64,000 bases of DNA from Macrostomum lignano (taxonomy: Eukaryota). Under the pieces are notes generated by a model. That model was not told where the DNA came from. It worked only from the letters and a program-made list of their open reading frames with translations, and made no database searches. Both the position numbers and the translations under genes were made by a program. This document shows, piece after piece, positions 2,776 to 63,955 of the stretch (positions are counted from its first letter, which is position 1; each line of letters opens with the position of its first letter). The stretch covers positions 744,001 through 808,000 of the forward strand of contig NIVC01000067.1 in NCBI GenBank assembly GCA_002269645.1, given 5' to 3'.

Positions 2776-4820
2776 GCGGTAGCATCGGGGCAGATTGTAA
2801 CAGCAGTAGCATCGGGGCAGATTGTAACAGCAGTAGCATCGGGGCAGATTGTAACGGCAGTAGAATCGGGGCATATTTCAACAGCAGTAGAATCGGGGCA
2901 GATTGCAAAAGCAACAGAATCGGGGCAGATTGCAACAGCGATAGAATCGGGACAGATTGTAACAGCAGTAGAATCGGGGCAGATTGCAACAGCAGTAGAA
3001 TCGGGGCAGATTGCAACAGCCGTAGAATCGGGGCAGATTGCAACAGCGGTAGAATCGGGGCAGATTGTAACAGCGGTAGAATCGGGGCAGATTGCAACAG
3101 CAGTAGAATCGGGGCAGATTGCAACAGCAGTAGAATCGGGGCAGATTGCAACAGCAGTAGAATCGGGGCAGATTGCAACAGCAGTAGAATCGGGGCAGAT
3201 TGCAACAGCAGTAGAATCGGGGCAGATTGCAACAGCAGTAGAATCGGGGCAGATTGCAACAGCAGTAGAATCGGGGCAGATTACAACAGCGGTAGAATCG
3301 GGGCAGATTGTAACAGCGGTAGAATCGGGGCAGATTGTAACAGCAGTAGCATCGGGGCAGATTGCATCAGCAGTAGAATCGGGGCAGATTGCAACAGCGG
3401 TAGAATCGGGGCAGATTGCAACAGCAGTAGAATCGGGGCAGATTGCAACAGCAGTAGAATCGGGGCAGATTGCAACAGCAGTAGAATCGGGGCAGATTGT
3501 AACAGCAGTAGAATCGGGGCAGATTGCAACAGCAGTAGAATCGGGGCAGATTGCAACAGCGGTAGAATCGGGGCAGATTGCAACAGCAGTAGAATCGGGG
3601 CAGATTGCAACAACAGTAGAATCGGGGCAGATTGCAACAGCAGTAGAATCGGGGCAGATTGCAACAGCAGTAGAATCGGGGCAGATTGTAACAGCAGTAG
3701 AATCGGGGCAGATTGCAACAGCAGTAGAATCGGGGCAGATTGCAACAGCGGTAGAATCGGGGCAGATTGCAACAGCAGTAGAATCGGGGCAGATTGCAAC
3801 AGCAGTAGAATCGGGGCAGATTGCAACAGCAGTAGAATCGGGGCAGATTGTAACAGCAGTAGATTCGGGGCAGATTGCAACAGCAGTAGAATCGGGGCAG
3901 ATTGCAACAGCGGTAGAATCGGGGCAGATTGCAACAGCAGTAGAATCGGGGCAGATTGCAACAGCAGTAGAATCGGGGCAGATTGCAACAGCAGTAGAAT
4001 CGGGGCAGATTGCAACAGCAGTAGAATCGGGGCAGATTGCAACAGCAGTAGAATCGGGGCAGATTGCAACAGCGGTAGAATCGGGGCAGATTGCAACAGC
4101 AGTAGAATCGGGGCAAAATGCAACAGCAGTAGAATCGGGGCAGATTGCAACAGCAGTAGAATCGGGGCAGATTGCAACAGCAGTAGAATCGGGGCAGATT
4201 GCAACAGCAGTAGAATCGGGGCAGATTGCAACAGCAGTAGAATCGGGGCAGATTGCAACAGCAGTAGAATCGGGGCAGATTGCAACAGCAGTAGAACCGG
4301 GGCAGATTGCAACAGCGGTAGAATCGGGGCAGATTGTAACAGCGGTAGAATCGGGGCAGATTGTAACAGCAATAGCATCGGGGCAGATTGTAACAGCAGT
4401 AGCATCGGGGCAGATTGCAACAGCAGTAGAATCGGGGCAGATTGCAACAGCGGTAGAATCGGGGCAGATTGCAACAGCAGTAGAATCGGGGCAGATTGCA
4501 ACAGCAGTAGAATCGGGGCAGATTGCAACAGCAGTAGAATCGGGGCAGATTGCAACAGCAGTAGAATCGGGGCAGATTGCAACAGCAGTAGAATCGGGGC
4601 AGATTGCAACAGCAGTAGAATCGGGGCAGATTGCAACAGCGGTAGAATCGGGGCAGATTGCAACAGCAGTAGAATCGGGGCAGATTGCAACAGCGGTAGA
4701 ATCGGGGCAGATTGCAACAGCAGTAGAATCGGGGCAGATTGTAACAGCAGTAGAATCGGGGCAGATTGCAACAGCGGTAGAATCGGGGCAGATTGCAACA
4801 GCAGTAGAATCGGGGCAGAC
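2776..4820. repeat. 27-bp minisatellite, about 75 copies (AGAATCGGGGCAGATTGCAACAGCAGT)
   Basis: Direct tandem repetition with few variant positions. It explains the 500-800 aa repetitive ORFs on both strands. Confidence 0.97.
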
Positions 4821-16121: not shown

Positions 16122-19100
16122 CGTAGTGACTTAGCGCCAACGGAAATAAAAACTGGACTCATGGGCGGGGATATGGCTGCCCCGGGACTCAAGACAGAGA
16201 AAGGCCAGGCCCTCCGCCTTCTGGCACATAGAAAATCTAAGATAGGAGGAGTAGAGATCAGTTCTGACACGCTGAGATGCCTGCTTGCAAAAAAATGTTA
16301 ATTAGTGCTTCTTGAGATGGAGAATCGCAATAGATTTATTTGTGGCTGTGATGAGAGAGTGCTGGCTGCGGACTGTGAGGTCGCGGGAGACTGAGATAAA
16401 GGCAAGAGAGTCTGAGACAAAGGCGAGAGAGGCTGAGACAAAGGCGAGAGAGTCTGAGACAAAGGCGAGAGAGGCTGAGACAAAGGCGAGAGAGTCTGAG
16501 ACAAAGGCGAGAGAGGCTGAGACAAAGGCGAGAGATTCTGAGATAAAGGCGAGAGAGTCTGAGACAAAGGCGAGAGAGGCTGAGACAAAGGCGAGAGAGG
16601 CTGAGACAAAGGCGAGAGAGGCTGAGACAAAGGCGAGAGAGGCTGAGACAAAGGCGAGAGAGGCTGAGACAAAGGCGAGAGAGGCTGAGGCAAAGGCGAG
16701 AGAGGCTGAGACAAAGGCGAGAGAGTCTGAGACAAAGGCGAGAGAGGCTGAGACAAAGGCGAGAGAGTCTGAGACAAAGGCGAGAGAGGCTGAGGCAAAG
16801 GCGAGAGAGGCTGAGGCAAAGGCGAGAGAGGCTGAGACAAAGGCGAGAGAGGCTGAGGCAAAGGCGAGATCCAAAGAATCAGGGTGAAGAGGCACTGAGA
16901 CGAAGACTTGCTGAGAAACGCAGCGCAAGAACGCAGGGAAGACAGGCTCTGATTGCAGCAGAACTGGTGGGTGAGGAGGTCGAGGAGCCCTCGAACTGAG
17001 GGCTGGCACAACTCCAGGCCACGCACGGAAAGAAGATTTTTGCTTCAGAAGGAAGCGCGGGGAAGGCAGAACGGCTCAAGAATTCTCTGAACTTAAATAG
17101 GGCCATATAAAACTGTTTACTCTCCCCCATCGGCCTCAGCCCCCCGTCATCAATCACGATCTGGTCCGAGTGGGATTTTTCTCCCATACTTTTTCTCCTC
17201 TCCCTGCCGGTGGGAATAGCTCGAAGAGGAAAAGTGGAATGAAATTCCAACTGTAAATGTGCGGCGCTATCTGTTCCGAATTTTTGCTTTTCTCACTTTC
17301 TTCCACTTTCACATATCCGCTCTAATATTTATTTTTTGGTCAGTGAATAATCCCGCAATGCAGTAAGATAGATGAGCACTCTTCCAGGGCACTTGTTAAA
17401 GAAGGATAGCGACTAATACGCTATTCCTTCAAGGATGCTTGAACTGTAAGTCACTCCCAGAGATGAGACTGAAAGTTTTCAATAAATATTTTTAAAGGGT
17501 ATTCGAATGAGCAGTACGAGTACGACAGTACGAGAGTACGACAGTACGACAGTACGAGAGTACGACAGTACGACAGTACGAGAGTACGACAGTACGAGAG
17601 TACGACAGTACGACAGTACGAGAGTACGACAGTACGAGAGTACGACAGTACGAGAGTACGACAGTACGAGAGTACGACAGTACGACAGTATGAGAGTACG
17701 ACAGTACGACAGTACGAGAGTACGACAGTACGAGAGTGCGAGAGTATGAGAGTACAAGAGTGCGAAGATACGAGAGTATCAAATCGTTCTCACCCGCGCT
17801 GAGCTGAGCCAGGCCGCAGGCGACTAGCACCGGCCGGATGCGCAGCACCAGCAGCCGGAAGCCGCTGAAGGCCAGGAAGAAGGTGAGCAGCAGGGTCAGG
17901 CAGCTGGCTGCGGCCATCAGAGCGAAGGCTGCACGCCAGGCGGGGCTGGGGATCTCGCTGAGGTGCCGATAGTGCCCGCAGTCCAGCACCAACTGAACCC
18001 GGCCGTCCGGCCCCAGAGCCGGGTAGGCGCACAGGCGAAAGAGTCCCAGATCGCTGAGGTGGCGGGCCGCCGCGGCAGAGTCCGGGACGGCGGCTGCGCT
18101 GTCCCGGCTTCCCTTGAGCCAGTAGGGCAGCAGAAACGCCGCCGAAGCCATCATGCCGCTGGCCCAGCACATGAACACCCAGCCGGCCCACAGACAGCGG
18201 AGCGGCTGCTGCTGCTGATGATGCCGATGCTCGAGCAGCCGCTGCCGTGACGGCGAAGCCGATCCGCCCAGCACCGCGGCAAACTCGGAGGCGGCGCCAA
18301 AAGTAGAGCCGCCGTCCGCGTCTGCGGCCACCTTGCGTCGGCGTTCCAACAGCTGGAGCGTCTTGCAGCTGTGCGCCTGCTGGCGCTGTTGATGAGATTG
18401 GAGAGGCTGCAGCTGCTGGTGCTGCGGGGGCTCCCAGGTCGACGCCAGACTGCCCATTGAGCACCTGCAGTAGAGGATCAAATGCGGGTCATGAGCAGCT
18501 TTATGAGTTGTATGAGCACTACTGCAGCTGTATGAGCACTACTGCAGCTGTATGAGCACTATTGCAGCTGTATGAGCACTATTGCAGCTGTATGAGCACT
18601 ACTGCAGCTATATGAACACTATTGCAGCTGTATGAGCACTATTGCAGCTTTATGAACACTATTGCAGCTGTATGAGCACTATTGCAGCTGTATGAGCACT
18701 ATTGCAGCTGTATGAGCACTACTGCAGCTATATGAACACTATTGCAGCTGTATGAGCACTATTGCAGCTGTATGAGCACTATTGCAGCTGTATGAGCACT
18801 ATTGCAGCTGTATGAACACTATTGCAGCTGTATGAGCACTATTGCAGCTGTATGAGCACTTTTGCAGCTGTATGAGCACTACTGCAGCTGTATGAGCACT
18901 TTTGCAGCTGTATGAGCACTATTGCAGCTGTATGAGCACTATTGCAGCTGTATGAGCACTACTGCAGCTATATGAACACTATTGCAGCTGTATGAGCACT
19001 ATTGCAGCTGTATGAGCACTATTGCAGCTGTATGAGCACTATTGCAGCTTTATGAGCACTTTTGCAGCTATATGAACACTATTGCAGCTGTATGAGCACT

Positions 19101-27451: not shown

Positions 27452-29436
27452 CTACTTCTCAACAATCAGGGTGCTGTAGAAGGTGTCGTGGGTGATCCAC
27501 TTTTCGAAGAAGTTAACGGTGACCCGGCAGCCGTAGACGCCAGCGTCGGATTCCTTGACGTCGTCGATGCCGACGGTGTAGTGGTTGGCGCTGCCGCGCA
27601 TGATCTCGATGCGCTTGTCGTCGGTGCGAGCCAGGAAGTCGGCCAGGGTCTCAGCGTCGCGCATCGGCTCAACGAAGACGCCCAGGCCGGCCAGCTCGGC
27701 ATTGACGCGGCAGCCGAAGCTCGCCTTCTGGCCAGCCTTGACGGTGATGATCTCTCGGTGGTCGGCCGGCTCCAGCAGCGGCAGCACCTGGACATCGATG
27801 GAGCGCCAGTCAGACTTCTCTTGGCCGCGGATGCACTGGCAGAAGTAGGTGCCGCTGTGCTCCTCTGGCTTGGCGTCGCGCACCAGCATGGCGGAGAAGC
27901 GGGGCAGCACCGGGACCTCGACAACCGGCATGTCGGTCTTGTTGTTCAGGTTCCACTCCACAGTCAGCTCCTCGTCCGGCCGGCGCTTGCCAGTGCACGG
28001 GCACTCTAGCAGGAAGTCGTCGCCGAAGCGGATGATGCGGTTGCTGAGCGGGTTCATGGACAGCACGGCCGGGTAGCCCTCGACCACGGAGACTGGCTTG
28101 GCCTCCAGGTCGCAGCCCTGTTCCTTGATGCAGGGCTCCACGGTCAGGGCGATGGTCTTCTCGCGAGTCACGTGACCCATGCGGCCGTTGTGCAGGCGGG
28201 CTCGGCAGAGAAACTCTTCGTTAACCTTGGGCCCGGCAGAGTCGATGATGAGGTCGAAGGTGGCCTTGCTCATCTGGATGGCGCCGTGCAGCATCTGGTT
28301 GAGCTGCTCCAGAGGGATGAGCCTCGGGCGGGGCGGGCCCGCTCTGGGCTTCTCAACGATGTAACACTCTGCGGCAGCGGCGTCCGGCTCGGTGGTGATG
28401 GCGTTGGACACGATGGCGCTCATGCCGGCCTTGACGGTGACCTCGTCCTCCTTCTTGGCGAACTCGCCCATCTTGGTGACGAAGAACTGGGCCTCTCGGC
28501 TGATGACGGAGCCGAACTCGTTCTTGGCCAGGCAGACGACGGCCTTGGTCAGGTCCATGAACTGCGGGTTGACGATCACCAGCTGGCTGCGCTCCTCGAT
28601 GCTGTCCGGCGGGCATGGGTGGTGGGCCTTGCAGTCGCGCTGCAGGTTGAAGAACGAGGTGCTGGTGGTGGAGTGATCCTTCAGCGGCTCGTGCGGGTTG
28701 GTGGTGATCTTGGCGTCGATCAGCTCAGTGATCAGAGACTCGTTAGCGACCTTCTTGACCAGACGCCACTCCACGGTTGGCTTGGGCATGCCGTAGGCCA
28801 AGCAGTTGAAGGTGACGATGAAGGGCCGGGCCTCTTTGTCGGCTTTCTTGGTTGTCTCCTCGGTGGCCGGCTTGATCAGGGCCTCAGTGATGAACAGGTG
28901 CTCGGGCTCAATCTGGAACTGAGGCCGCTGGGCAGCCGGATGGGCCGGGGCCTCGCAGATGAAGTTGCGTGGGATGTTGGTCTTGTTGGCCTCCAGCTCG
29001 ATCTTGCTGTGGTCCTTGTTCGGGTTGATCACCATCCAGAACTGCGGCTTGGGGGCCTCGTCCGGCTTCTCCTCTTTCTCGGTGCGCTGGTGCTTGCCGT
29101 GGCCCCTGGCCCTCGGCAGCGACCGGTGCATGAAGGTCGGGTCGAAGAACCACAGCGAGGTAGAGTCAGTATCGTGCTGGTTGCTCTTCACGATCAGATC
29201 GTTGATGAAGTACACCTTGTCCATTCGGTGGGCGAAGCTCAGCAGTCTGGCCTTGTCGGCCTGGCAGGCCTTGTAAGAGTCGTCGAAGAGCATGGGCTCG
29301 GACATCAGCTTCAGGCAAGAGGCCTCGTAGTTGGTGTGGAACAGGGTCCAGCCATCCGGCAGGTCATGACTAGCTGGCCGGAGTCGGCGCAAACGGAGGC
29401 TGCAAAAGCAGCCAGCACTAGCAGGCAGAGTCGCAT
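27452..29436 (-). CDS. intronless secreted protein: signal peptide + C-type lectin domain + about 4 Ig domains (contactin-like N-terminal architecture); 1-nt frameshift near 29358
   Basis: Signal peptide MRLCLLVLAAFAASVCA. Restoring one C gives TCPDGWTLF..SCLKL..C..FICE (CTLD). Ig motifs: FNCLAYGMPKPTVEW..CLAKNEFG, HSGTYFCQC, DVKESDAGVYGCRV. No TM segment before the stop. Confidence 0.8.
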
Positions 29437-56351: not shown

Positions 56352-59300
56352 TCAGTGACAGCCAAGCAAAGTGTCTGGATCAGCAGCAGCAGCAGCAGGC
56401 GCCAACGGAGGGGCTCTCCAACGCCGGAAGTAGAGCCAGAGCGCCAGCTCGCACAGCCCAGTGATCAGAGGGATGGCACCAGCCAGGCCCAGTACAACTG
56501 AGCGGCCGCTGGGACCGACTCTGGCAGACTGGCCGGGGGCAGTTCCGCTGCCAATGTAGGGCGCCAGAAGGTGCACAGTGAGCATAGATTGCAGATTGAA
56601 TGCCTTGGAGGCCAGGATGAGGTACAGGGAGGCGATCAGCGCGCTCATCGGCCGGTCGCGGCTCCAGCGACGTCGGTCGCGATCGGCCACTTCAACAACG
56701 GCCAGGGACTGCGAGGTGGGTTTACCGCAGTGGCGAGTTTACAGACTGCCTGTCTCCGCTTTAGTTCACAGCTAGTTCCGCCTTGGTTTACAGCTAGTTC
56801 CACTTTCCTTGGTTTACAGCTATTTCCGCTTTAGTTTACAGCTTGTTCCGCCTTGGTTTACAGCTAGTTCCGCTTTAGTTTACAGCTAGTTCCGCTTTGG
56901 TTTACAGCTAGTTCCGCTTTCCTTGGTTTACAGCTAGTTCCGCTTTAGTTTACAGCTAGTTCCGCCTTGGTTTACAGCCAGTTCCGCTTTAGTTTACAGC
57001 TAGTTCCGCCTTGGTTTACAGCCAGTTCCGATTCAGTTTACAGCTAGTTCCGATTCAGTTTACAGCAAGTTCCGCCTTGGTTTACAGCTAGTTCCGCTTT
57101 AGTTTACAACTAGCTTCGCTTTAGTTTACAGCCAGTTCCGCCTTGGTTTACAGCTAGCTTCACTTTGGTTTACAGCTACCTCCGATTTAGTTTACAGCTA
57201 GCCCCGTTTTAGTTTACAGCCAGCTCCGCTTTAGTTTACAGCTAGTTCCGCCTTGGTTTACAGCTAGTTCCGCCTTGGTTTACAGCTAGTTCCGCTTTAG
57301 TTTACAGCTAGTTCCGCTTTAGTTTACAGCTAGCTTCACTTTAGTTTACAGCTAGTTCCGATTTAGTTTACAGCTAGTTCCGCTTTAGTTTACAGCTAGC
57401 TCCGCCTTGGTTTGCAGCTAGTTCCGATTCAGTTTACAGCTAGCTTCACTTTAGTTTACAGCTAGTTCCGATTTAGTTTACAGCTAGCTCCGCTATAGTT
57501 TACAGACAGCTCCGCTATAGTTTACAGCCAGCTCCGCTATAGTTTACAGCCAGCTCCGCTTTAGTTTACAGCTAGCTTCACTTTGGTTTACAGCTACCTC
57601 CGCTTTAGTTTACAGCTAGCTCCGCTTTAGTTTACAGCTAGCTTCACTTTAGTTTACAGCTAGCTCCGCTTTAGTTTACAGCTAGTTCCGCCTTGGTTTA
57701 CAGCTAGTTCCGCCTTGGTTTACAGCTAGTTCCGCTTTAGTTTACAGCTAGTTCCGCTTTAGTTTACAGCTAGCTTCACTTTAGTTTACAGCTAGTTCCG
57801 ATTTAGTTTACAGCTAGTTCCGCTTTAGTTTACAGCTAGCTCCGCCTTGGTTTGCAGCTAGTTCCGATTCAGTTTACAGCTAGCTTCACTTTAGTTTACA
57901 GCTAGTTCCGATTTAGTTTACAGCTAGCTCCGCTATAGTTTACAGACAGCTCCGCTATAGTTTACAGCCAGCTCCGCTATAGTTTACAGCCAGCTCCGCT
58001 ATAGTTTACAGCCAGCTCCGCTTTAGTTTACAGCTAGCTTCACTTTGGTTTACAGCTACCTCCGCTTTAGTTTACAGCTAGCTCCGCTTTAGTTTACAGC
58101 TAGCTTCACTTTAGTTTACAGCTAGCTCCGCTTTAGTTTACAGCCAGCTCCGCTTTAGTTTACAGCTAGCTTCACTTTGGTTTACAGCTAGTTCCGCTTC
58201 AGTTTACAGCCAGTTCCGCTTCAGTTTACAGCCAGTTCCGCTTCAGTTTACAGCCAGTTCCGCTTCAGTTTACAGCCAGCTGCATCTGCCATGGTAAACA
58301 GTCTCACCTGCAAGTTGCAATTCAGTCCAACAATAGCACCATCCAATAACAGATAGGCCAGCTGCTGCCATAGGGCCAGTTCTGGCCCAGCCAGGTAGAA
58401 CAGGCCGCCAGTAGTAACGGTGAGGCCCGCTGCCAGCAGAGCGGCATCGGCTAGGGGCGCCCTGGCCAGGCAAGGATAGCAGAACATGAATAGCAGCGCT
58501 GGCAACAGCTGTGAGGCCAAATAGAACAGCGACTTGGCGCCGGCGCCCATAGCGGCGCCAGGGCCGGGCGGATCGAGCTGGTCGACCAGCATAGGCAGGA
58601 AGGCGGCGCCGAACCCCATGTGAAAATTGTGAGCGAATTTCAGCGCCAGCACGCATAGAAACAGGCGATCTGTGAATAACCGGCGAAGATTCTGCAACAG
58701 GCCCGGCTCGGCCAGGCGGATGGGTTGGCCCAGGCCGCTGGCTGCAGAACATGCGCCTCCGGGCTGCCAGACAGAAGGGTTGATGAGGGTGGGCTGCGGC
58801 TAGGATTCTGCGCTCGTGGGTGCTTGACACGCGATGGTGATGACGATGATGATGGTGGTGATGGTGATGATGGTGGAGGCTTGGCAAGATTCTGCACCTC
58901 CACGAAGCGTGCCGTCAACACGCGGTGCCAAGCGGGCAACCGGAGCAACCCGGTTGGCAAAGCAGAATCGGGGGGGGGAGAGAGGCCCGTAGCCTCGGCG
59001 TAACAGCCGCGGTCTATGGGCAAACCTCCTCGCAACAGAGTGGCTTGGACCTAACCGACCCAGGCACCTCTCGAAACAACAGTAAGGTTGAAAGCTTTGC
59101 CGAAAGTGAGAGAGAGAGTGAGGAACTGCTGCGGAAAATATCAAAAAAAAACAAAAAAAAGAAGGAGCATGAAGCGAACAAGGAAGAGAGTAATTGCACG
59201 TACCCAGAAAGCAAGGAAAGGCGAAGGGCTGAAATCAGCAGAGCGCTCGAGACCATCGAAAAGAACCCAGGACCGAGGCGTCCAGCACAAAAGACGGCAC

Positions 59301-62300
59301 GGAAGCTCAGACGAACCACACGACGAAAAAAGGTACGAGATAGGAAAGCGAGAGAGAAGGCCAGGAGGGCAAATGAGAGGTGGCACAATAACGACATAAA
59401 GCTAGCGACGTGGAATATGCGCAGAGCGAACGTAGGAAGCGGAAGGTTCGGCGAGGTCGTTAAGTACGCGATAGGAAAGGGATGGGACGTCACCCTCCTA
59501 TCCGAACTTGACACACCTGGCGTTGGCATCAGAAGCTACCATCACAGAGAAGCAGAGATGCACCTAGTCCACTCCCAGAAGGTGGGAATGCTTCTGGGAG
59601 AAACAGCCTGGACAATGTGGAACGAAACTGGGAGGAAGATGCACCCGATGAAACGAACACTTGCGCTGGAAATAGGCGGAGTGATCCTGATAGCCGTATA
59701 CCAACCGGTCAAGAAGGGTAAAGAGTACGAGGAAGAAGTGGATGAGATCCGAGAAGAAATCGAAAGGATGCTGAACACCTTTGCAAAGAAGGCTGTACTA
59801 ATCATCGGTGGAGATTTCAACGCCAGCGTTGGGAGCGGAGTGCACCGTCTCTCGAGCACAGGCCGTTATGGAATCGGACCAACGAACCAACAGGGTGAAG
59901 ACCTACTTCTTTGGCTAGAAAGCCTAGGCCTGGCATGGGCGAGCACCTTCTACAGGCAGAAGAAGCAAGGCACCTGGCGGAACCCGAGGTCACACCAATG
60001 GTACGAGATTGACGGCTTCATCACCAAGAAAGAGCAGAGACACCGGATCATCGGGAGCATCAGGACCGACCACGATCCGAATCACCATACGAGGTCCGAC
60101 CACCTACCGAAGGTCATCACCATGAAGAGAAGATTCGCGGAGAGATGCGCGGAACCAACCAGGAAGTATCCAAAAAACCAAAAAAACGAAATCGCCTGGG
60201 ACCGGCTCCGCGATGTCGGCGTACGCGAACTATACAGAAATAAGACGGAGGAAGTGCTAGCTGGAAAGGGCGAGACCGACTGGGAAACGACGAAACAAAC
60301 GATGCTTGAAGCCGCGAGAGAAATCTGCGGCCCAAAGACGAGACAGACGAACCCGTGGATGGTAGGGCACGAAGAAGAGCTGGCAGAACTTAACAAAGAA
60401 GTGGAGCACGCCCTGAGCGCCCGCAACCGAGTTAAGAAGTCACCCGAAGGGACCCTAACAGTAGAAGAGCGGACGGTGGCCTTGACCCGAGCCACACAAG
60501 GGCTGAAAGAGAAGCGGGGAAAGCAGAAGAAGAAACTCCAAGAGTGGATGGAACAGTGGTGGATGGAGATTGCCGAAGAGTGCAAGCGGAACTGCGACAC
60601 GGGAAACGTGGCTGGGATGTACGACTGTTTGCGGAAGATGGGCAGGAACACAAAGCAAAATGAGAACAACAGCAGAACAGTACCACTGTTCACGGCGGAA
60701 GACTTCAAGGAACACCTGTCAAAGATCCAGGAGCAACGGTTCGAGAACGACCAGGAGGAAATGCTCAATCTAATTAGGTCAGCCCCAAAGCCAAGCGTAG
60801 ACAAGGCTACGATAGAGGAAGCCAATGACCGGCTGTCCAGACCACTAACAAACAAAGAGATCGACGACGAAATCAAAAAGATCAAAGACGGGGCCCCGGG
60901 CTTAGACGGCATCCGAATGCGCTACATCACCAGCGCGTGCGCAATGGCCCAAGCGGAGGTCCGGAAAGTAGTGCACTACATCTGGAACAACCCAGCGGAC
61001 ACCTGGGAGGAGGACCAGAAAGTAGGTGTAATCATGCCACTCCACAAGAAAGGCGATCGGACGAACCTCAATAATTTCAGAGGGATCTGCCTCCTACCAG
61101 TCGCAAGCAGGATACTCGCTCGGATACTGGCGACGAGGCTGAGCTCATGGACGGAGAACATGGGTCTGCTAGACGACAACCAGTTCGGTTTCCGGAGCGG
61201 CCGGTCCACTATGGATGCGACCCAGATCATACTCAGACTGAACGAGGACGCCGAGAAGATCAGAGAGAGCCCAGAATGGGCAGAGTCGATGGATACCAGC
61301 CTAGTCTTGCTAGACCTTAAGAAGGCCTACCCGCGGGTAAACAAGCCGGCTCTTTGGGAACTGCTGAAACATCAGCACATGCCGGAGCGCACGATAAAAA
61401 AGCTGGCAGACCTGCACGAGTACACCGCGTACACGGTACGGTGCGGCGCAGAGACAAGTTCCGAATTTTACCCACAACGCGGGCTGAGAGAAGGCTGCGC
61501 CACATCGCCTATCCTCTTCAACATCTATCACCAGACGGCGATACGGATAGCAAAAGAGAGGCGCATGGAAAAAGCGAAGAACACCGGGGCCGAATGCGGA
61601 ATCAAGTGGGTTTGCCGACCGGGCAAATGCTTACCGCCTAAAAAGATGGGAGGTTACAACGAAGAAGCGGCGGAGATAACAATCACAGAAGTACTGTTCG
61701 CTGACGACACCACTATTGTCGGGGGATCCGAGGAAATCGAGCAAGGGACGAGAACCGTCATCGAGACCATCGGAATCCTAGAAGAACGGACGAACGATGA
61801 GAAGGAAGAGCGAGCTAAGCTAGGAACACCTGAGAGTCAGAACATCCGGATACTGGGCACCTGGATCGGCAGAAAGCAGGACACCGCCCAGCGGCTGCAG
61901 AGAGCTGCCAAAGCGTGGGCGGGAGTCAAATGCATGCTACGCAAAACACGACTAAGCAAACGCACCCAAGCTAGGATCATAGAGACCTGTGTTGAGAGCA
62001 CGATGCTCTTCAATGCAGGCGCCCGGCCCTTCCACAAGTCGGAAATTAAGCGGATGCAGCAGGCAATGGACCGTCGTTATCGGTACGTGTGGAGCAGCAA
62101 GACCGAACCACCGCTAAAAGAAATGGAGAGAAAAAAAGTGAACATGTGGGACGTGCGGAACGAACTGCGGGTCCGAAGCATCGGCGCCAAAGTCGAATCG
62201 GCCCACTGGCGCAGGCTAGGCCACGTACTCAGACTCCCGGATACCAGCACCGTCAAAAGATGTGTCCTCGGCTGGAGCAAGAAGCTGACTACCATCAAGA

Positions 62301-63955
62301 AAGCGCGGAAGAGAAGGCAGACCATCATCTCGGTATGGAGAAAGCTACTGCGCACGGCAGAAATCGATGAGCTGGAGGTCGAAAGGCTGGTGACCGATAG
62401 AGAGGCTTGGAGAAAGAAGTTACGCATCAGGGAAAGAGCGCTGGAGGAGAGCGAGAGGAAGAAAGGAAAGAAAGCAGAGACGACTGAGGAAGAAACAGCA
62501 CAGGAAAGAGAAGCCGGAGAAGTGGAATCGGAGCTGACCGGGTACAGGTGCAATTACGAGAACTGCGGGAAGGTGTGCGCGTCGAGAGCCGGGTTAGCCG
62601 TACACCAACGGAGGATACACCATCAATTTACGAAGACACCGCTGCCGTGCCTAAAGTGCAACGCTACCTTCTTCACGGAGGCGACAAGAAAAAACCACCA
62701 GAAGAGGTGCGGAGGAGAGGAGCGATCGGCGAAAGAAGTCCACTGCGGAGAGTGCAACAAGTGGATAAGCAAGTCCAACCACGCGCGGCATAGGAAACGG
62801 TGCAAGGAGAACGGAAGGAAACCAGAGGCGGGCGCGACACCGGACGAGAGGGCAGAAGAAGCAGCAGTACCAACGGGGAGAGGCCAGCAGACGACGGGGA
62901 TTACGGCGCGGATCTACAAGAGCGCCAGAGCTCCGTGCCCGGACTGCGGGAGGATGCTGGCCCGCACGAACATGGCCAGACATCGAAAGACCTGCCAGTG
63001 AGTCGGCGGCAGAGCGTCCACGCCGCGAGGCGAGAAAAGGACTGAAGAAGAAGAAGATGATGGTGGAGGGTGATGATGATGACGGTGGTGATCGTGACGG
63101 TGATGATGGTGGTGATGGTGATGATGATGATGGTGATGATGATGGTGATGATGATAATGGTGATAATAGTTGCCATTAAAGATGATGAAGTTACAAAATG
63201 CTGAACAATAAAAAGTAGAGAGATCTAATGCAAGTACCAAACTAAGACCAAGTACAGCAGTGAACTGTAGCTCACGTGGCACAGATTAACAGTCCGACAG
63301 TCGTACATAGTCCGACACTGCCAGCCGCAGTACATCACGGACAGCAGGGCTACAATCGAGGCCAGCACTGCGCAGAATTGAAAAGCGGACAGATTGGCCA
63401 GATCGGCCGAGGCCCAGTTAGCCAATGGCACGGCCAGACAAGCGGCCATGTAGGGCACCTGGGCTAGCCAGAGCTGGGACAGGCGGGTGGCAGTCTGGCT
63501 AGACATCTCAATAAGCAGTGAGGCGTGAGCAAATCGAACGCATTTATCAACCAGCTGGAACATCAGGTCAGTCAGCACCAACTGCAGGCCGATGTTAACA
63601 GCCGGCAGCCAGCGGAACCAATGCAAGCTGAACGCCAAGGCGTACACTGGTGCCGCGTACAGCAGCCACTTGCGACGGTCCGTCAGCCGGCTGTCCTGAA
63701 CATGCGACACGGCCAAACTGATCAGTGTGCTCCACAGCATAGCAACCAACTGGGACGCCTGGAACCAGTTCTCGCTAAGCAGGAACACCGTCAGGTACAC
63801 TTTGGCGCGGAAGAAATCTAATAGACCGGACACTAGCGACAGGCCAAGATTGCCGCTGGCGTAGGCCACGGTCTGGCGGGACACCTGCGGCCCGGCCGAG
63901 GCTGGCGTTGCCGACGCTGCTGCGGCTTGTTGCTGCAGAATGCCAACGGCTGCTT
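56352..63955 (-). CDS. MFSD13A: MFSD13A/TMEM180-like MFS transporter, 5' end beyond the window; exons 63955-63276, ~58793-58308, 56708-56352
   Basis: Multi-TM segments align by eye to TMEM180 (LRRLFTDRLF..FH..F...FLPMLVDQL; NLQ|SLAVVEVADRD..R...SAL; GAIPLITGLCELALW). Phase-0 GT-AG joins. The exon-B acceptor is the least certain boundary. Confidence 0.8.
56755..58280. repeat. 22-bp minisatellite (TTTAGTTTACAGCTAGTTCCGC) filling the last MFSD13A intron
   Basis: Seen directly. Confidence 0.96.
58879..58969 (+). ncRNA. HDV-like self-cleaving ribozyme at the element 5' end
   Basis: P1 GCTTGGC/GCCAAGC; P2 GATTCTGC/GCAGAATC; P3 ACC/GGT; L3 TCCACG; P1.1 CC/GG; GGGCAAC junction; P4 CAACCGG/CCGGTTG; J4/2 GCAAA with the catalytic-position C at 58958. 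Confidence 0.88.
58925..63001 (+). CDS. RTE ORF: APE endonuclease + reverse transcriptase + C-terminal zinc fingers (1358 codons open)
   Basis: APE motifs LATWNM, LSE, GGDFNA, IDG, SDHLP. RT motifs NFRGICLL, QFGFR, LDLKKAY, LREGCATSP, FADD. RTE-type WRRLGHVLR. Four C2H2/C2HC fingers. Confidence 0.95.
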   Translation: MPSGQPEQPGWQSRIGGGREARSLGVTAAVYGQTSSQQSGLDLTDPGTSRNNSKVESFAESERESEELLRKISKKNKKKKEHEANKEESNCTYPESKERRRAEISRALETIEKNPGPRRPAQKTARKLRRTTRRKKVRDRKAREKARRANERWHNNDIKLATWNMRRANVGSGRFGEVVKYAIGKGWDVTLLSELDTPGVGIRSYHHREAEMHLVHSQKVGMLLGETAWTMWNETGRKMHPMKRTLALEIGGVILIAVYQPVKKGKEYEEEVDEIREEIERMLNTFAKKAVLIIGGDFNASVGSGVHRLSSTGRYGIGPTNQQGEDLLLWLESLGLAWASTFYRQKKQGTWRNPRSHQWYEIDGFITKKEQRHRIIGSIRTDHDPNHHTRSDHLPKVITMKRRFAERCAEPTRKYPKNQKNEIAWDRLRDVGVRELYRNKTEEVLAGKGETDWETTKQTMLEAAREICGPKTRQTNPWMVGHEEELAELNKEVEHALSARNRVKKSPEGTLTVEERTVALTRATQGLKEKRGKQKKKLQEWMEQWWMEIAEECKRNCDTGNVAGMYDCLRKMGRNTKQNENNSRTVPLFTAEDFKEHLSKIQEQRFENDQEEMLNLIRSAPKPSVDKATIEEANDRLSRPLTNKEIDDEIKKIKDGAPGLDGIRMRYITSACAMAQAEVRKVVHYIWNNPADTWEEDQKVGVIMPLHKKGDRTNLNNFRGICLLPVASRILARILATRLSSWTENMGLLDDNQFGFRSGRSTMDATQIILRLNEDAEKIRESPEWAESMDTSLVLLDLKKAYPRVNKPALWELLKHQHMPERTIKKLADLHEYTAYTVRCGAETSSEFYPQRGLREGCATSPILFNIYHQTAIRIAKERRMEKAKNTGAECGIKWVCRPGKCLPPKKMGGYNEEAAEITITEVLFADDTTIVGGSEEIEQGTRTVIETIGILEERTNDEKEERAKLGTPESQNIRILGTWIGRKQDTAQRLQRAAKAWAGVKCMLRKTRLSKRTQARIIETCVESTMLFNAGARPFHKSEIKRMQQAMDRRYRYVWSSKTEPPLKEMERKKVNMWDVRNELRVRSIGAKVESAHWRRLGHVLRLPDTSTVKRCVLGWSKKLTTIKKARKRRQTIISVWRKLLRTAEIDELEVERLVTDREAWRKKLRIRERALEESERKKGKKAETTEEETAQEREAGEVESELTGYRCNYENCGKVCASRAGLAVHQRRIHHQFTKTPLPCLKCNATFFTEATRKNHQKRCGGEERSAKEVHCGECNKWISKSNHARHRKRCKENGRKPEAGATPDERAEEAAVPTGRGQQTTGITARIYKSARAPCPDCGRMLARTNMARHRKTCQ
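63056..63170. repeat. (GAT/GGT)n trinucleotide microsatellite split by the RTE insertion (other part at 58833-58879)
   Basis: Seen directly. Confidence 0.92.

Follow-up and report, generated by a model that had tools for sequence, protein, structure and literature searches.

An HDV-like ribozyme with an enlarged L3 loop at the 5' end of an intact LINE in Macrostomum lignano

An intact LINE with a ribozyme at its 5' end

We analysed a 64,000-nt stretch of DNA from the flatworm Macrostomum lignano (contig NIVC01000067.1, positions 744,001 to 808,000 of the forward strand; hereafter the window), in which a long interspersed nuclear element (LINE) begins with a ribozyme of the hepatitis delta virus (HDV) type whose loop L3 is enlarged. 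The element occupies 58879-63055 on the plus strand, is 4.18 kb long and contains just one open reading frame (ORF); the ribozyme makes up its first 91 nt (Table 1). It is a young and intact LINE of the apurinic/apyrimidinic endonuclease (APE) type, with the Pfam domains Exo_endo_phos_2 and RVT_1 (reverse transcriptase, RT) in one frame of 1358 codons, and a Pfam domain search detected no RNase H domain in the ORF. The LINE runs antisense to two flanking host ORFs that resemble membrane proteins, 58248-58697 (-) and 63225-63884 (-), and probably lies in an intron of the host gene between them, on the opposite strand.

The element is bounded by a target-site duplication (TSD), which places its 5' end at G58879 within 1 nt in either direction: G58879 is the last base of the 5' copy of the TSD, and that G may instead be G1 of the ribozyme. 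An earlier note on this DNA, made from the sequence alone, had put G1 at the TSD boundary, that is, at the exact 5' end of an intact LINE, and both the TSD and the ORF agree with it. At the 3' end, a tail of the (GAA)n type is also present in the relatives L012, L013, L022, L024 and L014; the tails found among the relatives are (GAA)n, (AGATTCA)n, (AGTCA)n or (GATAC)n. The nearest protein relatives are encoded on ~4-kb contigs from marine and other metagenomes and by a gene of Branchiostoma belcheri, with 36-43% identity over ~90% of the length.

A complete HDV-like fold conserved in related LINEs

The segment 58879-58969 (+) contains the complete HDV double pseudoknot, read from the sequence and checked by script, with P1, P2, P3, P1.1 and P4 in canonical order. 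The RNA reads GCUUGGC AA GAUUCUGC ACC UCCACG-AAGCGUGCCGUCAACACG-C GGU GCCAAGC GGGCAACCGGAGCAACCCGGUUGGCAAA GCAGAAUC. Every helix described in the earlier note pairs base for base (P1 7, P2 8, P3 3, P1.1 2 and P4 7 bp), and the two junctions that it reported, GGGCAAC and GC-AAA, are read in the sequence as J1/4 (GGGCAAC) and J4/2 (GGC(58958)AAA). The signature nucleotides are also kept, namely U58899 (U20), G58904 (G25), the L3 cytosine pair with the two G after P1, and C58958-AAA; U20 and G25 are invariant in HDV-type ribozymes (PMC3386971). From this arrangement, the cut is predicted immediately 5' of G58879.

An HDV-like ribozyme stands directly upstream of the same ORF in twelve related LINE lineages, whereas no recognisable ribozyme was found at L007 (Branchiostoma), L008, L011, L052 and L053, which are 5'-truncated or divergent. 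Plain MAFFT alignments mis-registered variants with a P1 of 6 bp against those of 7 bp and were replaced by a structural alignment of 13 ribozymes, fitted by hand to the structure, in which padding with N preserved the register in MAFFT. In this alignment, whose hand-fitting favours such a result, 96.7% of cells form standard pairs, compared with 34-49% when the 3' partners of the same alignment are slid by 1-3 columns. Changes on both sides occur in 16 of the 21 pairs; of 500 column shuffles, none gave values as high. P2 is represented by 12 different sequences, all of them complementary, and the C(A/G)AA motif of J4/2 is kept in all relatives. The covariation, together with the slid and shuffled controls, thus gives good support to a family-wide fold. 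The earlier note had named loss of the pairings in other copies as evidence that would count against the ribozyme; the twelve relatives form them, with compensatory changes. Its assignment to the HDV-like class therefore stands on the homologous, covarying ribozymes that related LINEs carry at this position, and we regard the identity of the ribozyme as secure.

We also asked how often such a fold arises by chance. A strict descriptor set a priori (G1, UCCNNG, GG after P1, G(G/A)C(A/G/U)A before P2, P4 of at least 4 bp, L3 of 6-60 nt) had the ribozyme site as its sole match in the window; among 1000 dinucleotide shuffles, it was matched by 5. Loose pseudoknot descriptors gave many chance matches, and one that demanded only a P1 of 7 bp, a P2 of at least 7 bp, a P3 of 3 bp, UCC and GG was satisfied in 25% of the dinucleotide-shuffled windows. 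Significance thus comes from the conserved nucleotides and not from the helices alone.

Among the relatives, variation was seen at two further places of the ribozyme. In L015 (208-296), L016, L019 and L021, P1 starts with a C1-G pair and P1.1 is UU/AA (L3 UUUAAGG, J1/4 AAAG) instead of CC/GG, a double compensatory change in a pseudoknot of two pairs. At the cleavage-site pair, L009 (56-140; identical to L010) and L048 (87-166) have A opposite C (ACUGGC/GCCAGC and ACUGGU/ACCAGC, respectively) rather than G-C or G-U, and in L051 A faces G. The G1.U37 pair of HDV would have an isosteric counterpart in an A+.C wobble.

An 18-nt insert in L3

L3 of the window ribozyme measures 25 nt. Removal of 18 nt between G25 and the last L3 nucleotide (C26) leaves a canonical loop of 7 nt, and the borders of this insert are ambiguous by 4 nt because a direct repeat of CACG flanks it. 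L3 has 7 nt in seven relatives, 8 in one and 9 in two, and 24 nt in L009 and L010; with 25 nt, the window ribozyme departs from the compact L3 usual for the family, which has about 7-8 nt (7-9 among the relatives). The relatives L012, L013 and L024, which share the (GAA)n tail, are among the closest protein matches of the window element (41-44% identity), and L018 and L020, at 42-43% protein identity, have an L3 of 9 nt. These relatives indicate that the long L3 of the window is derived. The relative L027 has the same P1 (GCUUGGC) and the same L3 start (UCCACG) as the window, without the inner stem. As the earlier note had claimed, L3 keeps UCCACG and is enlarged at positions 26/27. The enlargement is both real and derived.

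The insert comprises six codons and leaves the reading frame of the element unbroken. In L009, 17 nt (AACCAACAACAUGCGCA) follow an intact UCCGAGC at the same place of L3; their sequence is unrelated to that of the window insert, which indicates an independent event. In the antigenomic HDV ribozyme the nucleotide that corresponds to the next position is C29, accessible or bulged out and one of loop III's least conserved (PMC3386971). The insert most probably loops out, given that this nucleotide bulges from the core, and by analogy with HDV such a loop-out after G25 would be structurally reasonable.

The earlier note further described a stem-loop in L3. The complementarity of GCGUG (58907-58911) and CACGC (58919-58923; GCGTG/CACGC in DNA) is indeed real and gives a perfect stem of 5 bp with a 7-nt loop, CCGUCAA; the energy of this stem, on the other hand, is no better than that of shuffled sequences (see below), and L009 has no such hairpin, its insert lacking a stable fold (-1.5 kcal/mol). 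The robust feature is therefore the presence of extra nucleotides at position 26, and folding of the L3 insert into an extra hairpin is plausible, going by the predicted pairing.

A separate observation concerns CGUGCCGUC (58909-58917), within the insert, which has a perfect 9-nt complement, GACGGCACG, at 59293-59301, ~385 nt downstream and just past the 2A-coding stretch. By chance, about 0.03 matches of this kind would be expected over the 620 nt searched; the complement could be either a long-range pairing or a coincidence.

A reading frame through the ribozyme and a 2A-like motif

Upstream of its endonuclease domain, the element encodes a motif resembling the 2A peptide, in which N114, P115, G116 and P117 are nearly invariant across 13 aligned proteins. 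Compared with the pattern -GD(V/I)ExNPGP-, which stands 40-80 aa into the LINE ORF from its N-terminus, the motif of the window matches at I, E and NPGP, reads ET in place of GD, and lies ~128 codons from the element's 5' end. A 2A-like motif is also present in L001, L004, L006, L009, L014, L018, L025, L048, L049 and L051, and a more distant element, L053, has the canonical GDIEENPGP.

The frame of NPGP is free of stops from nucleotide 2 of the ribozyme to the 2A motif in 10 of the 11 elements compared, the window included, whereas the other two frames have 1-8 stops over the same stretch. Its first codon, at ribozyme nucleotide 2, is CUU or CUG. No in-frame ATG precedes NPGP in the window, L025, L009 and L049; in the window none precedes the endonuclease domain either, the ATG at 59169 being +1 out of frame. 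As the frame is open through the ribozyme, the ribozyme seems to double as a coding leader. The folded 5' end would thus probably also serve translation of an AUG-less frame that runs through the ribozyme, and the 2A-like NPGP would free the ribozyme-encoded leader from the endonuclease/RT protein. HDV-like ribozymes have been proposed to promote AUG-independent initiation (PMC6765202), and the combination of ribozyme and AUG-less frame fits this proposal by analogy.

Comparison with known ribozymes and LINE clades

In end-to-end alignments, the window ribozyme has the same nested double pseudoknot as genomic HDV (RF00094) and the Faecalibacterium (F. prausnitzii) ribozyme (RF02682). The common core comprises the UCCNCG start of L3, CC/GG in P1.1, GGGCAAC, which genomic HDV has unchanged as its J1/4-P4 junction, and GGC-purine-AA, which holds the catalytic C. 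The window ribozyme differs in its L3 (25 nt, compared with 7-8 nt), in its short P4 and in its location, since it stands at the 5' end of a LINE whereas the other two lie in a viral genome and a bacterial mRNA, respectively.

HDV-like ribozymes at the 5' ends of LINEs are already well known, and the departure seen here is the expansion of L3. The ribozymes of R2, RTE (drz-Agam-2 type) and baggins (Eickbush 2010/2013 and Ruminski 2011, summarised in PMC6765202 and PMC3774820) likewise occupy the first nucleotides of their elements, with the cut at the 5' junction. The likeness extends to promoter-less elements that are freed from co-transcripts and to an ORF that is open upstream without a clear AUG, for which a role like that of an internal ribosome entry site has been proposed. 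The parts described as variable in size are J1/2 (peripheral P1.2 domains; PMC4908430), P4 and J1/4, whereas L3, P3 and P1.1 form a conserved block in which only Nasonia R2 has been noted for an unusual spacing of L3 (PMC3774820). Unlike known LINE ribozymes, the window ribozyme has a J1/2 of just 2 nt and its expansion in L3. No description of a 17-18-nt insertion in L3 was found in the literature searched, an absence of evidence, as Webb 2009 and Ruminski 2011 lie outside that literature.

In layout, the element resembles L1Tc/ingi of trypanosomes, which combine a 5' HDV-like ribozyme, an N-terminal 2A NPGP, APE and RT (PMC3185411, PMC4035085, PMC3708506). It differs from L1Tc/ingi in that RNase H was not detected and in that its 3' end is a short simple-sequence repeat (SSR) tail and not poly(A); its 2A motif reads TIEKNPGP, compared with DIEQNPGP in L1Tc. 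L1Tc has a C-terminal Cys/His finger domain, and the window element has conserved, finger-like Cys/His motifs at its C-terminus; faint zf-C2H2 matches were obtained in relatives.

The RTE clade is characterised by an extremely short 3' untranslated region (UTR) ending in simple-sequence repeat units (PMC2887409). The window element has a single ORF with APE and RT and a very short 3' UTR (54 nt) with an SSR tail, as RTE elements do, but it differs from them in an additional C-terminal region of ~150 aa with Cys/His motifs and in the N-terminal 2A-like motif. 2A-like peptides have been reported in the Rex1, Crack, L2, L2A, CR1 and Ingi clades, and not in RTE (PMC3708506). The label "RTE" is tentative: the ORF and the 3' UTR fit RTE, whereas the 2A motif and the fingers fit a layout of the L1Tc/Ingi type.

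Putative activity and alternative explanations

We consider it likely that the element begins with an HDV-like ribozyme by descent, which cleaves at the element's 5' end and in which the 18-nt insert of L3 is tolerated but not required. Judged by its sequence, we would on balance expect the ribozyme to be an active, L3-expanded variant. In a longer transcript that carries the element, the double pseudoknot would fold, and C58958 together with a bound Mg2+ would catalyse attack by the 2'-OH of the upstream nucleotide and cut just 5' of G58879, so that the template for retrotransposition would then start at the first base of the element. The insert would most likely loop out at the position that is bulged in HDV, possibly as a 5-bp hairpin. 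By analogy with the ribozymes of R2, RTE, baggins and L1Tc (PMC6765202, PMC3774820), the ribozyme would trim RNA co-transcribed upstream, and no internal promoter would be needed.

In two lineages, the window and L009, a ribozyme with a long L3 stands on a full-length element that starts at the predicted cut. The TSD of the L009 element (GGUUGACCGUGA, 12-15 nt) has a 5' copy that ends exactly at nucleotide 1 of P1. Full-length 5' ends at the predicted cut are expected if a parent RNA with the same ribozyme cleaved itself. This coincidence of 5' ends is the main, indirect argument for activity, and it would fail if either insert arose after integration.

Several observations weigh against an active ribozyme, and part of them speak for the main rival, a disabled copy. 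According to this rival, a true HDV-like ribozyme was crippled by the 18-nt insert, which arose in this copy or its immediate parent, e.g., by slippage between the CACG repeats, and which disturbs the core or favours a misfold, so that the element's own RNA is not processed. We hold this to be unlikely, though worth serious weight. L3 belongs to the catalytic core, and ten relatives hold it to 7-9 nt; a direct repeat of 4 nt stands on either side of the insert. Folded in isolation, L3 has the inner stem as its minimum-energy structure (-6.6 kcal/mol), which does no better than chance, being equalled by 20-69 of 200 shuffles. Furthermore, the nested minimum-energy fold of the 91 nt contains a competing hairpin, GUGCCGU/GCGGUGC (58909-58915 with 58922-58928), that would occupy the 3' strands of P3 and P1. 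The window holds no second copy or fragment of the LINE that would show inheritance of the insert, and no protein closer than about 40% identity to the LINE ORF was found in the databases; the insert could therefore be private to this copy. In addition, nucleotide -1 is G in the window, which one study gives as least favourable for genomic HDV (PMC1874588), and since the copy lies antisense to the host ORFs, a driving transcript or host read-through is not evident at the locus.

The covariance models belong with these points. At the gathering score, no Rfam model matched anywhere in the window. In E-value mode, full-length alignment to the models over 58877-58972 gave 24.2 bits with RF00094 and 22.5 bits with RF02682, below the gathering scores of 50 and 44, respectively, and both alignments place 19 nt of L3 in an insertion. 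The Infernal comparison with Rfam HDV models that the earlier note had proposed thus yielded an end-to-end alignment, but scores under gathering. However, relatives with a canonical L3 score just 23-29 bits with the HDV-family models of Rfam (best 29.1) and also stay below gathering, which makes the sub-threshold score a trait of the clade and not of the insert; the gathering criterion is too narrow for this clade of LINE ribozymes. A custom covariance model (R1), for which six relatives but not the window were used and P1 and P3 alone were annotated, was too weak: it located 58879-58970 end to end with 9.2 bits (E=0.86, rank 2), with filters off only, and also missed several genuine relatives. 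A weak R1 match just 3' of the L003 and L004 elements was rejected, as no HDV-like fold was seen on inspection.

Against a disabled copy stands, above all, the state of the element, which is otherwise pristine, with an intact ORF and a perfect TSD. The insert preserves the reading frame and sits at the one L3 position reported to be bulged out and unconstrained (PMC3386971). Furthermore, L009 carries an independent 17-nt insert at the same site and has a full-length 5' end at the cleavage position. We thus continue to favour an HDV-like ribozyme that tolerates its insert.

A very improbable alternative takes the inserted stem as the real P3 and CCGUCAA as the real L3, with ACC/GGU plus UCCACGAA as an internal loop below. 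GCGUG/CACGC does form a perfect 5 bp, and the CC at the start of the 7-nt loop could pair with GG. However, CCGUCAA lacks the invariant U20 and G25, both of which are present in UCCACG (PMC3386971), and L3 would be shifted eight base pairs away from J1/4. The relatives align UCCACG or UCCGAG as L3 and ACC/GGU as P3, and L027 has the same UCCACG with no stem; the inner stem was accordingly rejected as the true P3. Finally, a chance resemblance to HDV in GC-rich sequence, with no ribozyme ancestry, is hardly credible at all: although loose descriptors match many shuffled windows, Rfam gives no match at gathering and R1 has a poor E-value, it is effectively refuted by the few shuffles that match the strict descriptor, the location of the motif exactly at the element's 5' end and the compensatory changes in the homologous ribozymes of the relatives, canonical members of which also stay below Rfam gathering.

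Returning to the tolerated insert, a broader reading can be put forward tentatively, and we would not quite bet on it. The 3' side of L3 (HDV 26/27) may be a naturally exploited site of expansion, at which 17-18 extra nucleotides are compatible with self-cleavage and which has been used at least twice (window, L009); the ribozyme may at the same time be a leader that is translated without an AUG and later removed by 2A, with the insert respecting the frame.

Implications

The descriptors and covariance models with which HDV-like ribozymes are sought hold L3 to about 7-8 nt and leave J1/2 and P4 as the only parts free to vary in length. Should ribozymes that carry an 18-nt insert after G25 be active, searches with a short L3 would under-count the family and would have missed a natural class, and position 26 would offer a new place for grafting aptamers or protein-binding hairpins onto the core. 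If activity is abolished by the insert, the window simply holds an ordinary LINE ribozyme in a copy that was disabled recently. A LINE family that is widespread in marine invertebrates and flatworms is also documented here; it combines a 5' HDV-like ribozyme, an AUG-less frame that is open up to the first nucleotides, a 2A-like peptide and ends associated with SSRs. This family is a compact natural system for tests of ribozyme-assisted, cap- and AUG-independent translation.

Features and surroundings of the element

Table 1. Coordinates of the LINE, its ribozyme and the target-site duplication in the window
Feature	Position	Strand	Details
TSD, 5' copy	58866-58879	+	GATGATGGTGGAGG, 14 nt; inside (GATGRT)n microsatellite 58833-58878
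P1, 5' strand	58879-58885	+	GCUUGGC (DNA GCTTGGC); 7 Watson-Crick pairs with 58927-58933; Rfam alignment
J1/2	58886-58887	+	AA
P2, 5' strand	58888-58895	+	GATTCTGC (RNA GAUUCUGC); 8 Watson-Crick pairs with 58962-58969
P3, 5' strand	58896-58898	+	ACC; 3 bp with GGU (DNA GGT) 58924-58926
L3	58899-58923	+	25 nt; U20 C21 C22 A23 C24 G25 = 58899-58904, then insert, then C26 (58923)
L3 insert	58905-58922	+	AAGCGUGCCGUCAACACG, 18 nt; deletion gives canonical 7-nt L3 UCCACGC (DNA TCCACGC)
P1.1	C58900/C58901 with G58935/G58934	+	2 bp; the two G are the start of GGGCAAC
P3, 3' strand	58924-58926	+	GGU; script pairing
P1, 3' strand	58927-58933	+	GCCAAGC; script pairing
P4 hairpin	58937-58956	+	7 bp; CAACCGG (58937-58943), loop AGCAAC, CCGGUUG (58950-58956)
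Candidate catalytic cytosine (C75 equivalent)	58958	+	J4/2 GGC-AAA; aligns to conserved C of RF00094 and RF02682
P2, 3' strand	58962-58969	+	GCAGAATC (RNA GCAGAAUC); script pairing
LINE reading frame	58880-63001	+	1358 codons; open from 58871; stop codon 62999-63001
2A-like motif	59243-59275	+	...ETIEKNPGP (...RALETIEKNPGP); NPGP 59264-59275; upstream of endonuclease domain
APE endonuclease	about 59396-60109	+	catalytic SDH motif conserved
RT	61043-61861	+	FADD motif kept
C-terminal Cys/His finger-like motifs	about 62537-62998	+	
3' UTR	63002-63055	+	54 nt; ends in (GAA)4 tail 63044-63055
TSD, 3' copy	63056-63069	+	GATGATGGTGGAGG; directly after (GAA)4; microsatellite runs to about 63164

Microsatellites of the (GATGRT)n or (GAT)n type border elements of the family, following the short tail specific to each element, and the 14-nt TSD of the window copy itself consists of microsatellite sequence. 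They were seen as 5' flanks in the window (58833-58878), L014, L015, L016, L019, L021 and L027, and as 3' flanks in the window (63056-63164), L001, L006, L011-L013, L015-L017, L022, L024, L051 and L052. These borders may reflect a target preference or SSRs generated by the element, as described for RTE. Elsewhere in the family, the 3' flanks of L009 (about 4060-4113) and L014 (about 4110-4170) are homologous (GTGGYTGACC..TCCTYCTGGAGATGTTRTCCAAGAA), which suggests that elements inserted more than once into a shared host repeat or into another mobile element.

In the window, the neighbourhood of the insertion is a microsatellite rich in CAT/CAC, which codes for poly-His on the minus strand. Just upstream of the host ORF 58248-58697 (-) stands a tandem array (58002-58281) of the 22-nt unit TAGTTTACAGCTAGCTCCGCTT, with 12.7 copies and 90% matches, that can also be read with a period of 66 nt. 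Farther away, the window carries an LHFPL-like ORF at 17492-18481 (-) and an Ig-domain ORF at 27452-29392 (-) that is 100% identical to Macrostomum lignano BOX15_Mlig020807g3.

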